A DNA stretch of 63,819 nucleotides, the filler included, from Cercozoa sp. M6MM (lineage: Eukaryota; Protista; Endomyxa: Ascetosporea), in assembly GCA_040357565.1 (NCBI GenBank). It is 3 parts of 3 records of this genome, joined end to end, with 100 filler letters (N's around TTAATTAATTAA, not from the genome) between each part and the next. Parts side by side here need not be neighbours in the genome. Positions count along the whole stretch, not along the records: positions 22,146 to 39,925 come from JBDODJ010000255.1; 2 more parts are not named here. The stretch is one strand, 5' to 3'. The notes below the pieces were generated by a model. That model was not told the DNA's origin and searched no databases. It saw only the letters and a program-made list of their open reading frames with translations. Shown here piece by piece: positions 28,112 to 39,925 of this stretch. The position numbers were made by a program, and so were the translations under genes. How positions within the stretch are numbered: position 1 is the stretch's first letter; every line of letters begins with the position of its first letter.

Positions 28112-31100
28112 CTACATGCCACCAGCATCGAGCACCTGCTGGAACAGCACCGTGGCGAACTCCAGCGAGCGCATGAAAGTCGGCAGCGAGTTCTTGCGCA
28201 TCAGGCCGAACACGACGTCGAACGCCTCGCGCAGCGCGGCGTCAAAGTCGGCATGGTTCTTCTCGCTGTCCAATACAGACTAGTACATGGTGGTGGCAGG
28301 GAATAAAGCAAGCTAAGAGTACCCCAGAGCAGTCTCAATGCGTGTCTTGATGTCGTGCGGAATGTTCACCTGGTACGGCGACATCAGTTTGATGTAAGTA
28401 TGAAACAGTGCCTGCTGCTGCTCACTGCGCTCGGCATCCAGCAGTGTTCCTATTTGAAAGGGGGTAAATGAGGGGAGCAAGGGAAAAGGAGGCTAGAAAG
28501 CTACCCTGCTGCAGTGCCTCCAAGTACTGCTGCGCTGCGTGGAAGAACCGAATGTTCTCGGTGCGTTGGAACCTCTGTACATGGGGCGGGGGAGGGGTAA
28601 AGGGATAAAGGGACAAGGACAAGGCGTACCTCCAGGTGCTCGGCAAAGGCACGACACACATCGGTGCCAGCGAGCAGGAAGTTGCCGAACTGTTCCTTGC
28701 TGTAGTAGGCACTCCATGTGAGTCGCTGCAGCATGCTCTGGATCTCCTCGCCGAGCTTTTTGGTGTTGTCCATCTCCTGGAAGCGCTTCTTCTCGTTTTG
28801 CACGATGGCGCGTTTCTTGGCCTCCTCCGGGTCCACCGGGTCCATTGGCTACACACCCACGCGGATATACTGATTACAAAAAGGCAGCGAACTGACCTCT
28901 GCCCTGCGCTCGGCCAGCGGCAGGTTCAGCCGGTCGCGTCGCTGCTCCTCCGACAGGAAGCGACCGATCACGCGGACATTGTCCTGTGGGATACAATGAG
29001 TCACTACACGCCCCTTCGCCCTCTCCATTGTGTGAAGGAAGTACGCGCAGTTGTTGCGGCGTGCGCGACAGTGCGTAGCTGCAGTAAAGCAAGTGTAGTG
29101 GGTGCATATCCCCCCTGGGTGTATGTACCTGAGCGTCAGCGACAGTTCTTCATCGGCCTTCTCGTCGTCGTCTCCACCACCGAAGGCGCGCAGTGTCGGT
29201 TCCATCGCGATCTCGTCAACCCTACGGAAAATCAAACAATAATGGAGACACAGTGCATTAAAAAGCACAGAAACAAAAAACAAAATTATGTTGGTAAACT
29301 CATGTATACATTATTATAGAAGCAAAAAAAAATGAACAAGCAAATGTGACACAAACATATAAACCGCAAATACACTAATAAATAACATACATATACATAT
29401 ACATATATATATACATATATAGTGGCATATTACTTAGCATGCACAGTGTTGAGTGCCTCTGTCGACGCGAGTAGCCACTCGCCGCGCACGCGCACGAATT
29501 CCTCCAGCACGGCACCTGCAGCAAGACAAACGTATCCGTCCAGTATGTTCCAACAAACAAAAATGTAGAGAGGTTACGCGTCTCAGCAATGCGTTCGTGC
29601 TCGAGTTGCTCGGCACGTCGCAGCAGTTGCTTGAACCCGTCCTACACACACAAACACACAGGCACACATAACACACAGACACAGACACACAGACACACAC
29701 AGTAATACCCCCCATGTTGTGTACCTCATGCTGCGGCAGTTTTTCGTTGGCCCGTGAAACAATCGACGCGAACTCTTCGCACACCTGTTGCAGAGACACC
29801 CCCAGTGTTTTACCCCTCTTTAGGCCCCCCCCCCCAGATGGGAGCGTACGGTGGACGCCTTGTCGGCGGCTTCGCGTGTGGCTTGAAGATTCTCGTCGTT
29901 GGGCTCGGCACCCCACACGATCGGCTGCACCAGGTCCTCCACCGCGTCCATCGAGCGCGCCGACGTGCAGTCGCGGTCGTCGTACGGCATGTCCTCCGCG
30001 CGGACCAGTGCTTGCACCTGAGATGTGTTCCCTCCATAATTAAGAACAAGGTAGTTTTTGCACAAGATGGTACATTGGCTTTCGAAGCTGCGGCGATGGA
30101 AAGATTCAATGCCGAAATGGCATCGGCACGTCGCGAATCCGCCTGTGAAAAGTCCGGCCAATTTACTGAATTTGTCAAAACAGAAAACATGAAAAGTCTC
30201 ACTCACCTCGCCACGAATCTGCGCGAGTTCCTTCTGCAGAACACGTTGCTCCTGTAGCGCGGATTTGCGTGACAACTGACTGCCTTCCGAGAACTTGTCG
30301 AGCTTGTTACTGCGTGCAAACTCATGCGTTAATAGCTTTCTGTCATATTTAGCTTTCACAAGCTTTCACAAGCTTTCACAAGCTTTCACAAGCTTCACAT
30401 AGCTGTAGCATTTAGCTTTGACGCTAAACTTTCACTCAGACAGAAGGAGCACAAGTACCTCAGACTCTCCCATTTCTCGCGATGCACAGCCGTTGCATCG
30501 AGGGACGACATGCCACCCACGCTCTCGAGAACCGAGAGCACCTGATCAGTTCACTCACTCGTCAAGCAGCACACACTCCATCGTGCGCACTCAAAGCACC
30601 TGCTCTAGTGAATCCGACGGCACTCCCTGCGGGATCGTGTTCTGCTCGGCATACCGGCGGAAGAAACCAATCTCGGCCTGCGTCAGCTCGTAGACCTGGA
30701 AAATAGACAAAAAAAAAACTGGGATCTCAAAAATACTACAAACACTGCAGTGAGGCGAGCTTTACCTGTTTGGACAGTTGTGAGTGCATTTGATGCAACT
30801 TCTTAAAGTACGCCGACAGGCGTTTCGCGAGCAATTGGCCCTATCGCATAGAAACCCCAATGAAACGCCAAAAAGCACATTTTGAAATTTAAACTACCTG
30901 AGAAAGCTGTGTGTCAAGTTGTTCGAAACGACGCATCCATACGTACTCAGGTTCATCGCCGACCAAGGCGGCCTTCTCGCCTTCGGCAGACGAATCGGAG
31001 GATTTTGCGACTGAGACGACCTTCTTGCGTGCACGGAAGAAACGGTGCTTGTCGGTCTGGGGGGGGGGGGGCAGTCCAACAGTGCATTTAAGTAGTACTT

Positions 31101-32934: not shown

Positions 32935-34759
32935 TCACAGCACCGAGTATTGATTGAGCAGCTGAATCTGCGAGTCGAGCTCTTCGTTGCGTCGCTGCAC
33001 AAAGTCGCGGAAGGCCTGCGAGCGCACGAGCTCCGTGTGCAGGTTCTACAAGATCCATGTGATATTAAAATTTAATATATAAATAAAAAATAAATAAATA
33101 ATATATACATATAAATATATATATATATATATATTAGACGGGGGTTATGGCTACCGCTTTAAGCAGCTCGCGGATCTCCTCCATGGCAGTGGCCCACATG
33201 GACTCCTGTAGGTCCTCCTCCTCGAGTTCGTCGATAGGCTTCTGATCGATCATGTGTTTCCAGTCGCGCATGCGCTCGAACAACTCGTGGTCAAAGTTGA
33301 CCTGCGTCGACGACGACGAGTCGACGAACTTGGCGTAGATACGCTGCAGCACAGCGTTGAGCATCTTGACCTCGGGCACCTGCTGCAGACGCTGCATGAA
33401 CTCGTCCATCTCGACCAAGAAGTCGACATTCTCCGAGCAGAGCTTCTTCTTGGCCAGGTCACGCAGCAGTCGCCGCGCCTCCGAGTCGCCCACGATGCGC
33501 GTGATCGACCAGTCCGTCTGCAGGAAGCGCGTCTCCTCGCCACGTTCTGCCGCGCGCTGCGTCGCCTTCAGCGCGAACGCCGCCAGTAGCAGCACGCCGC
33601 ACGACACGATGCACATCACCACGGCCACCGTGGCACGGTTCTTGGCCGCATCACGCTGTCGCTGAGCCTCCTCATCAATCTCCTGGATCAGCGGCTCGTA
33701 CACCTGCTCGTGCAGGTAGCGCCGCTGCGCCTCGAACGTCGAGTACTCGGGTCCCGTCGGGATCTGGTACTTTGGCAGCAGCGTGTCGTCCAAACCGTAC
33801 GACCACACGAGCTGCGCGCCGCCTGCCAGCGCCAGTGCCGAACCATTGTACTTCACAAACACCGTCGACTCCAGCGGCGTTTCGGCCCAGCCCGATGACA
33901 GACCCGTCGTCTTGGCCTGTGCAAGCACACGCACACACAACCGATCAAAACGCATACCAGCTCACTCCCTTTCAAAAAAAAAAAAAAACACTGTACCAGA
34001 CCAAACGAGGCCGAGCTGCCGGCCAGGTCGTACACACCCTTAGTGGCGAGCACACCCCTGCAAACACATGACAGGACGCTGCTTATCAACAGAGAAAGAA
34101 AGTGTCTTGTTAAGGTACTGAAGTACAGATAATCGAGCTCGAAGCGCTGAGCCGTCTCGGACTTGGCGAGCAGCTCCTCCGAGATCACGTACTCGTTCTT
34201 GAGCTTGACCACGGCCGTGGCGTTCGCGACGAGTGCCTTGAGGTGGGTCGAGACGCACTGCACCTCAAGTTGGGCCGGTTGGCCGAACGAGTCGCGCGTG
34301 CACGTGCGCGTCGGCAGCATGAAGGCCTCGGCCGGAGCGCCGGGCAGGAAGTCGCCGCCGTTGTTGATGGCCACGAGCGAGTTGTAGTAGTCGTTGACAA
34401 TGTAGGGCGTGCGCGCCGCGCCGTCCTCCATCATAGCCTCGATCTGGATCTGGTAGTACTCCACGTAAAACGACTTCTCGTACGTGTCCGTGGCGTCGCT
34501 CAGCGTCTTGCTGCTCAGCGTGAGCAGTGTGATGCCAGCCACCAGGTTGAGCACCATCACCTGTGGCAACATCCAACACAGTAAATCAATTTCAGTTTGC
34601 ATTTTCCTTAAGGGTGGAGCTTACAATCCACAGAGCGATGATGAAGCGGCGACGCTCCTTGATGTACTGCTCGTCGATCGCCGTGCGCACCTGGAAGTTG
34701 CTGCCGCCCTTGAGCACATCCTGGCTCGCCTGTGGTCACACCATGTGTGTGTGTGCGTG

Positions 34760-34802
<43 letters not shown>

Positions 34803-36604
34803 CACCTGCTCGCCGGCCTGATCGTTCGAGAGCGAGTTCATCTTGACGAGCGACACCAGGTGGCGACGCGAGTTCACAACGGCTTCCTTAAAGGCCGCGT
34901 TGAGCTGCTTCTCGCGACGAGCACGGAACAAGAGCACCTACACACAAAAACGCTAATTTGGATTTTTTGACATCATTGCTCAAAGACGCAAAGGTACAAT
35001 GAGCAGCAGCATCTGCAGCGTCAGCGACGTCGCCAGCATGCCAATGGACGCACGCGACAGCGACTCCACTGAGCTGCGGTTGTCGGCGGCCTTCTCCGAG
35101 ATGACTGAAGAACACAGATTTTTTAAATAATTTGACTGCTTTGCCTGTAAGATCAAAAGTAGTATGCAATACCAGTGGCAGCCACAGGGAACAGGTCCAG
35201 CAGCTTTTTGTCGGTCGTTTGGTAGAGCGTAGGACGCCACACCGTGCCATTAGGATCAATGGCCGGCTTCAGGGCCTGCGCACACAAGGCATATAAAATC
35301 ACACACTTCACACTGTGCAGACGTGTACGAAGGTACCTCATTGGCGACCATGAGCAGGTTGAAAGCAATGTAGCCGCAGTTGGCAGCTGGCGCACCCGCA
35401 CACTACACAAAGGAACACACCTCCAAAGTTACGAAAAAAACACGGGAAAGAACGAAAATTCTCATGTCAGGCATATTCTCGGACTAATTTACCTCGGGAA
35501 TCTGGAGAACAGCCGCTTCGATCTGACGCAGCTGCTTTGAGTAGGCCAGTATGTCATCGCCGAGTTTCTGCACATACGCACACATATGAGAAGAATTGAT
35601 GTGAAAGTGTCATGTGACACACCTTCTGGTCATTGTCCTTGAGCCACCGGTACAGACGGTCGCGGTGGCTTGAGAACTCCTTCATCACTACACAAGCAAT
35701 AATAGCACACAGGCACATAAAACACAGACAGAGACACACCCGTCGAGTAGCGCTCATCCCAGTACGCCGTGCCGGGTCGAAACTCAACACCAATGGCACC
35801 GTAAGGCCAGACCCAGTCTGCCTGCGCAAACGTATCTAACATAGACGCACTATTCAACATACCAATGGCATCTCATACATAGGTCTCGTTGGTGTTGGTC
35901 GTGAGATCGGCGTGGATAGCCTGAGCCGTCTGGTTGAGCACGTCAAAGCCGGGCGACTTGAAGCGCATGTGCGACGCACCCACCAAGGTGTGGTGGCGGT
36001 ACGCCATCTATACAGCAAAACAGACCGAAGTGAGTGATCGTACAGGCCTAACATAGACCGAACAGCGAGTGACGCACCTTCCAGTTGGCACGAATGGCTT
36101 CCAGATCGTTCTGGAGCTCGTTGTTGATCCGCGACGACGTTGTTACGGAGAGTGCCAGCACCGTCACAAGCGCAACCAGGTTGAAAATAATGAAGGCCGT
36201 AACCAGGAAACGGGAGCGCTGCTTGAAGCCTGCAAACACCACACAGTTAACTTGAGGGGTCAGCAGGGAAAAAGAAATAGAAAAGAAGCAGTGCCTTCAA
36301 GTCGCAGGTGAGCCACACGAAGGTGCACAGCCGGCGACGGACCATGTGAGTCGGTTGAGACCTACCAATAGAAAGTAATGGTCTAGTATCACGAGAAGAT
36401 CATCAGGGAAAAAGAGCCTACCGAAGTGGCAGCCGACATACGACGGGCATCGATGGTGCCAGGATTGTCAAAGTCGTCAATGTCCATGTCTGCGAAGGTT
36501 GGCGTGTAGGTCGACGCACGACCAGCCGAGGTCGGTGACGCCGGCGGCTCAAACGACGACGGGCCGCCAGAGGCACCGGCCTCCAAGTCGATGCCGAGAT
36601 CCAT
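32935..36604 (-). CDS. Membrane protein with two TM-large loop-TM modules and a C-terminal RGS domain
   Basis: RGS: ARRLLRDLAKKKLCSENVDFL...IYAKFVDSSSSTQVNF...AMEEIRELLKA-NLHTELVRSQAF. Four hydrophobic helices: FLVTAFIIFNLVALVTVLAL, IGMLATSLTLQMLLLI-VLLF, FIIAL-VMVLNLVAGITLLTL, VAVVMCIVSCGVLLLAAFAL. Confidence 0.8.

Positions 36605-36896: not shown

Positions 36897-39925
<3,029 letters not shown>

Follow-up and report, generated by a model that had tools for sequence, protein, structure and literature searches.

The stretch of DNA analysed here (the window, 63,819 nt including filler, from the genome assembly GCA_040357565.1 of Cercozoa sp. M6MM) carries on its minus strand, at 36604–32935, a gene for a protein of 877 amino acids (aa), P0001, in which four transmembrane (TM) helices and two large loops precede a C-terminal regulator of G protein signalling (RGS) domain. 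On balance we lean towards reading P0001, from its sequence, as a lineage-specific and membrane-embedded GTPase-activating protein (GAP) for a G-alpha subunit, that is, as a receptor GAP without the seven-helix (7TM) design, which might be gated via its ectodomains. In the mechanism that we propose, the N-terminus of this four-pass protein would be cytosolic, the two loops would be extracytosolic and the canonical RGS domain, placed some 22 residues beneath the last helix, would act at the membrane to speed up GTP hydrolysis by a G-alpha subunit. The loops would act as ectodomains, the state of which could be set by a ligand, by an adhesion partner or by oligomerisation. This state would be relayed via TM4 and the short linker behind it, or via trafficking as for AtRGS1, and the outcome would be a changed access of the GAP to G-alpha. 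That the loops, or a ligand bound to them, may regulate the GAP is suggested by analogy with the 7TM-RGS proteins (AtRGS1 and the Naegleria family, PMC9283941) and with mGlyR (GPR158) acting on RGS7 (PMC12834959).

The locus is a genuine protein-coding gene, a single gene with the layout TM-loop-TM-linker-TM-loop-TM-RGS. The coding region runs from an ATG at 36604 to the last base of the stop codon at 32935, exactly the limits proposed in an earlier description made from the sequence alone (the sequence-only reading), and every string quoted there is present in the gene: LRVAHLRLEGFKQRSRFLV crosses the junction of exons 2 and 3 and requires a GC-AG intron, VRTAIDEQYIKERRRFII is located in exon 12, and ISEKAADNRSSV and IDEEAQRQRDAA correspond to aa 308–319 and aa 666–677 of P0001. 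The 16-exon model was built by hand on the raw sequence and its translation in three frames; the exon lengths total 2,634 nt (877 codons and the stop) and a single frame runs through them without in-frame stop, with 15 introns of 52–109 nt each, 14 of which are GT-AG and one of which (intron 2) is GC-AG. The two exons of the linker, 11 and 12, are read through without interruption. When exon 15 alone was used as a query in an exhaustive protein scan, it retrieved at 100% identity the 877-aa record MES1912510.1 at NCBI (hypothetical protein MHM6MM_004775, Cercozoa sp. M6MM), which is P0001; all 16 exon translations are ordered substrings of this record, with only four split codons in between. 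The record found in this way was used for all whole-protein analyses. As transcriptomic reads entered the public annotation of the genome through the train and update steps of funannotate (PMC11069148), the model of P0001 is at least partly transcript-informed. Two introns have features of their own. Intron 2 (36230–36294) has the donor GCACTG, and a GC donor was also chosen by the public annotation; an alternative GT donor lies 20 nt upstream and keeps the frame too, at the loss of VAHLRLE. Intron 15 (33046–33154) interrupts the RGS domain and is the longest of the set (109 nt); it is nearly all A/T, with TA and ATAT repeats at 33074–33134, and in this it is unlike the other 14.

Exactly four hydrophobic segments were found in P0001 by a Kyte-Doolittle (KD) scan, in which TM segments were defined as hydrophobic 19-mers (KD 2.27–2.77), at aa 92–110, 328–346, 417–435 and 684–702. 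They divide the protein into an N-terminal tail of 91 aa, a first loop of 217 aa, a linker of 70 aa, a second loop of 248 aa and a C-terminal part of 175 aa, in agreement with the sequence-only reading, where four helices in two pairs had each been seen to enclose a soluble loop of about 200 aa. In order to orient the chain we rely on three indirect signs. Lysine and arginine residues in the 15-aa flanks number 4 before and 1 after TM1, 2 and 5 around TM2, 5 and 1 around TM3, and 4 and 4 around TM4. All six NxS/T sequons fall within the loops (four in loop 1, two in loop 2), with none in the three segments predicted to be cytosolic, and each loop has one closely spaced pair of cysteines (C252/C260 and C509/C524). 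These signs are concordant and favour a topology in which the N-terminus is inside, the loops are extracytosolic, and the linker and C-terminus are again inside. Since the N-terminus is predicted inside and the helices are four, the C-terminus with its RGS domain would be cytosolic; the orientation that had been put forward for the loops is the one to which the sequons, cysteines and positive-inside pattern point.

The domain behind TM4 matches the RGS family PF00615 over aa 725–856 with an E value of 2.2e-10 and 41.4 bits (cutoff 23.9), and covers profile positions 2–117 of 117. It begins 22 residues after TM4, as close to that helix as had been claimed, and it is the sole family that Pfam found on nine exon-level pieces of the gene. 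Searching the PDB with a profile of the family (P0001 and its paralogs, see below) returned 30 RGS chains and nothing else, with RGS10 and RGS8 as the best matches (E 7e-6); the single-sequence match to solved RGS domains reached 16.7 bits and E 0.014. Foldseek on a low-confidence AlphaFold2 model (pLDDT of about 45–76 in this region) returned RGS1, 2, 8 and 16 with probabilities of 0.90–0.97, TMt of 0.5–0.59 and E of at least 0.25. In the HMMER alignment to RGS10, LCSENVDF stands opposite FSEENVLF and STQVNFD opposite SSQVNVE, which pairs E749, N750 and N794 with the RGS10 motifs SEEN and QVN; all four family sequences share E749 and N794 without exception. We take E749/N750 and N794 to be the equivalents of the contact positions E87/N88 and N128 in the complex of RGS4 with Gi-alpha-1. 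Judged by this alignment, the domain keeps three key G-alpha-contact residues, the Glu-Asn and the Asn. A PDB search with exon 16 for the contacts of helices 7–8 gave as sole match an irrelevant designed coiled coil.

The family to which P0001 belongs is small and, as far as our scan reaches, peculiar to one genome: it comprises two further paralogous genes, one of which has the same 4TM-RGS layout. A phmmer search with exon 15, which covers the end of loop 2, TM4 and most of the RGS domain, against 1.84 billion representatives (E<=1e-3) returned four proteins, namely P0001 itself, an irrelevant repeat protein, P0003 and P0004. P0003, likewise encoded in this genome, has 282 aa, in which a TM segment is followed by an RGS domain; it is probably truncated because its contig measures 3 kb. 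P0004 (732 aa, MHM6MM_004527) is encoded on another contig of the same genome and shares its cluster with a 764-aa isoform, P0005; in both, four helices with two loops (about 155 and 204 aa, three sequons in each) precede an RGS domain, and the pattern of flanking charges is that of P0001. An alignment of P0001 with P0004 is possible only over a stretch that begins at the end of loop 2, takes in TM4 and runs into the RGS domain (29% identity over 139 aa); their loops are unalignable. Diverged loops on a conserved TM4-RGS unit are as expected if fast-evolving ectodomains sit on a conserved signalling core. Directly before TM4, at aa 663–682 (about 33632–33691), the family shares the juxtamembrane motif (R/K)(Q/E)RD...A, with L663, R675, D676 and A682 invariant; as the sole conserved element predicted to be extracytosolic, it is a candidate for relaying the signal. 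No close relative outside this genome was found in the single-sequence phmmer scan, which excludes only close relatives elsewhere because at this library size E 1e-3 demands about 35 bits and ordinary RGS proteins fall below it. Word-index searches with exon 15, with full-length P0001 and with the family alignment returned nothing or P0001 only, which is weak evidence given their length and word limits, and a scan of metagenome loci with the family alignment gave 386 pattern matches, none of which was confirmed by tblastn. The orphan status is in good part explained by a lineage that is very poorly sampled. The two isoform models of the paralog differ from each other within the RGS domain: P0005 has a 16-aa insertion and the conserved last RGS helix, P0004 has no such insertion, a different C-terminus and no last RGS helix, and neither model may be fully right.

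The loops themselves resemble bacterial sensor modules in topology. The sequence-only reading had likened them to the helical sensors of bacterial chemoreceptors; a chemoreceptor-type fold of the loops is not borne out. Pfam at E<=1 gave no match for the loops, either exon by exon on the nine pieces or with the whole proteins of both paralogs, 4HB_MCP, CHASE3 and Cache included, and no PDB sequence matched outside the RGS domain at E<=10; by these profile and sequence searches, P0001 fits no chemoreceptor sensor family. AlphaFold2 and Foldseek, the check that had been suggested, gave no usable sensor-fold match: the mean pLDDT of P0001 was 38.6 from the single sequence and 42.1 from a four-row alignment, with both loops below 50, a confidence too low for any structural claim on the loops. 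In both runs long helices are continuous with each TM at both loop ends, at low confidence; in these models the arrangement is typical of bacterial sensor modules, and ectodomains of other kinds that are built of helices show it as well. At such a pLDDT, Foldseek matches to folds other than RGS are meaningless, and this holds for a PDB match to the sensor of McpS (probability 0.15, rmsd 26.7). The ESM Atlas model of P0001 has a pTM of 0.50, and a structure search in this atlas gave no neighbour above a TM score of 0.5. Language-model features from the same resource placed TM1-loop 1-TM2 nearest to the clusters of PilJ (18 of the 30 named hits), CHASE3 and 4HB_MCP_1, at 0.87–0.91, a lead rather than a finding by the tool's own calibration, as these matches rest on only 92–134 shared features. 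We do not commit to a four-helix bundle because parts of both loops look mixed alpha/beta by eye (for example, loop 1 has ADWVWPYGAIGVEFRPGTAYW and loop 2 has STVFVKYNGSALALAGGAQLVWSYGL). A scaffold like that of Prominin or TTYH, in which two large helical extracellular loops lie between helix pairs, was considered as a further candidate and set aside, having no Pfam support.

We also asked whether the two modules are duplicates, as the sequence-only reading had it. The entries into TM1 and TM3, KQRSRFLVTAFI--IFNLVALVTVLALSVTTSS and KERRRFIIALWIVMVLNLVAGITLLTLSSKTLS, are identical at 15 of 33 positions, and their Smith-Waterman score of 61 is the top one when the TM segments of both paralogs are paired in 28 ways, ahead of 46 for the runner-up; it was reached in 3 of 2000 shuffles that preserved the pattern of hydrophobic, basic, acidic and polar residues. 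Self-alignment of the modules by hhalign, using two-sequence profiles, recovered the same 37 columns (P 0.012). No similarity was detected between loop 1 and loop 2 (Z -0.28), between TM2 and TM4 of P0001, or between TM1 and TM3 of the paralog. The modules are hence alike in topology, and in sequence they are weakly alike over about 35 residues at the TM1/TM3 entry, the part of the claim that stands; for the loops and for the second helix of each pair it does not hold. An old internal duplication is plausible from these comparisons. With nothing but the TM1/TM3 entry standing out, we reject the idea that the modules as a whole were clearly duplicated in tandem.

Proteins that combine an RGS domain with at least one TM domain have been reported in most eukaryotic lineages, and the cercozoan Bigelowiella has 39 RGS genes (De Mendoza et al. 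2014, PMC3971589). Because such TM-fused RGS proteins are so widespread (PMC3971589), to present P0001 as an unrecognised class of receptor, as was done in the sequence-only reading, is an overstatement. The 4TM receptor-like layout is not described in the literature that we searched and is a variation on a known receptor-RGS theme; a full-text search, in which the main survey of RGS architectures (Anantharaman et al. 2011) was not covered, returned no paper on RGS domains combined with MCP-type sensors. The nearest parallel is offered by the 7TM-RGS proteins, AtRGS1 of Arabidopsis and the families of Naegleria fowleri and Trichomonas, in which a polytopic membrane domain likewise precedes a C-terminal cytosolic RGS domain close to the last helix, and for which one and the same logic is proposed: what the membrane receptor puts out is GAP activity towards G-alpha and not nucleotide exchange (PMC9283941, PMC3971589). 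However, these proteins have seven helices whereas P0001 has four and lacks a GPCR-like (G protein-coupled receptor) bundle, most of its sequence outside the RGS domain lies in two loops of about 220–250 aa between helix pairs, and no sequence relationship to them was detectable outside the RGS box. With four helices counted, P0001 is not a 7TM-RGS protein, in line with what had been expected of it.

Sensors of bacterial chemoreceptors and histidine kinases (4HB_MCP, PilJ, CHASE3, dCache) share with P0001 the succession of a helix, an extracytosolic domain of 150–250 aa, a second helix and a cytosolic output near the membrane, and the predicted loops of 217 and 248 aa lie within the range of 150–280 aa that two TMs enclose in a sensor module. 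In contrast to these sensors, P0001 has two modules in tandem per chain, an RGS output in place of HAMP-MCP or a kinase, and a eukaryotic host. A functional parallel comes from mGlyR (GPR158), the Cache ectodomain of which controls the GAP activity of a cytosolic RGS7/G-beta-5 complex (PMC12834959), so that an extracellular sensor controls an RGS protein there as proposed for P0001. The RGS protein of mGlyR is separate and bound non-covalently to an animal 7TM receptor, whereas in P0001 the RGS domain is fused to a 4TM protein. The RGS-PX proteins SNX13, SNX14 and SNX25 are similar in that their RGS domain is anchored by N-terminal TM helices, with no 7TM bundle. Their two helices form a short hairpin, PXA, PX and PXC domains surround the RGS domain, and large extracytosolic loops are lacking. 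As Pfam gave no PXA or PX match in P0001 at E<=1, we do not assign it to this type.

Several observations weigh against a gated receptor GAP. The flanks of TM4 are charge-neutral; Pfam, sequence searches of the PDB and structure prediction brought up no ligand-binding fold in either loop; the positions that we take to correspond to D163 and R167 of RGS4 are Q and D here, as aligned by eye; and the loops would be lumenal and not extracellular if the protein sat in an internal membrane. A membrane-tethered RGS protein without ligand gating, the helices and loops of which anchor a constitutive GAP or serve in adhesion or in the glycocalyx, is the main alternative, one that we find possible but rather doubtful; in a variant of it the protein may be embedded in an internal membrane, its loops in the lumen, as are the two helices at the N-terminus of the RGS-PX proteins SNX13/14/25. 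A mere anchor would hardly need about 465 residues of loop that look structured and bear sequons and paired cysteines, the short connection of 22 aa between TM4 and the RGS domain is like that of signalling receptors, and PXA and PX domains are absent; nevertheless, a tether would fit the failure of Pfam, PDB sequence search and structure prediction to reveal a sensor fold, the lack of loop conservation between paralogs, and the variety of TM-fused RGS proteins throughout eukaryotes for which no ligand is known (PMC3971589).

Alternatively the RGS domain could be a scaffold that lacks catalytic activity, like the domain of axin or the RGS-homology domains of GRK type, and the protein would have a function other than G-alpha deactivation. 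Its low similarity to solved R4/R12 RGS domains (16.7 bits, E 0.014), helix 7–8 contact residues that look substituted in the alignment by eye, and the loss of GAP activity in some RGS domains (PMC3971589) would suit this view, but the best PDB matches are catalytic domains of R4 and R12 type and not axin or GRK, and the equivalents of the Glu-Asn and of the catalytic-site Asn are kept, with E749 and N794 invariant among paralogs; we thus regard a scaffold as very unlikely. An artefact of the gene model, in which adjacent TM-loop-TM and TM-loop-TM-RGS genes were wrongly fused or the exon set was mis-called, is scarcely credible: the 15 short introns keep a single frame with no in-frame stop and exons 11–12 read through, the public annotation has the same 877-aa product, and the paralog P0004/P0005 independently carries four TMs and an RGS domain in a single product, which leaves on the other side the GC donor of one intron and P0003, a possible shorter TM-RGS form that is itself probably truncated on its 3-kb contig. 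Compared with the receptor GAP that we favour, a stronger claim would be that two tandem chemoreceptor-like TM-ectodomain-TM modules directly gate the fused RGS domain, as a non-7TM receptor class so far found only in apofilosan Rhizaria. We consider this unlikely; if it were true, extracellular cues would switch G-alpha off, or release it, without a GPCR-type bundle, and the receptor GAP principle known from AtRGS1 would have been invented independently.

What is understood of how receptors control heterotrimeric G proteins comes almost wholly from 7TM proteins, with GPCRs as exchange factors and 7TM-RGS proteins as receptor GAPs. Should four TM helices, two ectodomain loops and an RGS domain with competent residues indeed work together in P0001, eukaryotes would have wired G-alpha deactivation to surface modules other than the 7TM bundle, and the protein would be a compact model of a two-helix sensor module driving an RGS domain. 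This significance is tempered by the fact that TM-fused RGS proteins of assorted helix number have already been noted in most lineages (PMC3971589), and by a family that is known from one genome and a sensing role of the loops that we infer. The idea is testable in principle, given that a culture and a chromosome-level genome are now available for Lemnamoeba sinaloensis, the name lately given to strain M6MM, from a barely sampled rhizarian lineage (PMC13746701). Coordinates of the gene and of the protein segments are collected in Table 1.

Table 1. Exons of the P0001 gene and segments of its product, with positions in the window
Feature	Position	Strand	Remarks
Exons 1–8	36604-36422, 36361-36295, 36229-36078, 36007-35879, 35821-35740, 35687-35623, 35567-35493, 35402-35337	minus	hand-built model
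Exons 9–16	35275-35173, 35104-34998, 34937-34806, 34729-34625, 34560-34127, 34057-33997, 33916-33155, 33045-32935	minus	hand-built model
N-terminal tail, aa 1-91	36207..36604, introns 1 and 2 included	minus	Ser/Thr/Pro-rich, without sequons, ends in basic KQRSRF; predicted cytosolic
TM1, aa 92-110	36150..36206	minus	KD 2.68; K/R 4 before, 1 after
Loop 1, aa 111-327 (217 aa), exons 3-10	35046..36149	minus	4 NxS/T sequons, cysteine pair C252/C260; no family match
TM2, aa 328-346, across intron 10	34929..35045	minus	KD 2.27; K/R 2 before, 5 after
Linker, aa 347-416 (70 aa)	34643..34928, intron 11 included	minus	14 K/R, without sequons; predicted cytosolic
TM3, aa 417-435, across intron 12	34522..34642	minus	KD 2.61; K/R 5 before, 1 after; entry KERRRF...NLVA..T.L.LS like that of TM1
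Loop 2, aa 436-683 (248 aa), exons 13-15	33629..34521	minus	2 sequons, cysteine pair C509/C524; no Pfam or PDB match
TM4, aa 684-702	33572..33628	minus	KD 2.77; K/R 4 before, 4 after; aligned to the final TM in P0004 and to the TM in P0003
RGS domain, aa 725-856, across AT-rich intron 15	33001..33505	minus	PF00615, E 2.2e-10

Strain M6MM, which was obtained from the gills of fish, is a marine amoeba of amphizoic habit and has been placed in the Apofilosa (Rhizaria); its genome has 52.8% GC and unusually many AC:GT repeats (PMC11069148, PMC13746701). The piece of the window that carries the gene is eukaryotic, has about 52% GC and many AC/GT microsatellites, and agrees with these published traits. 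Around the gene, Pfam on ten neighbouring open reading frame (ORF) pieces gave nothing informative. The next ORF piece upstream (37390–37854, minus strand, 155 aa) is strongly hydrophobic, with several stretches of helix length; it had no Pfam match and probably represents one exon of a further polytopic membrane protein. Long AC/GT dinucleotide microsatellites lie at 29644–29701, 34744–34799, 38319–38405, 38510–38624 and 39812–39924, the second of which is a (TG)28 tract inside intron 11 of the RGS gene. Those at 38319–38405 and 38510–38624 border a 100-N assembly gap and the one at 39812–39924 reaches the end of the piece, in agreement with the report that short-read contigs of this strain break at simple-sequence repeats (PMC13746701).

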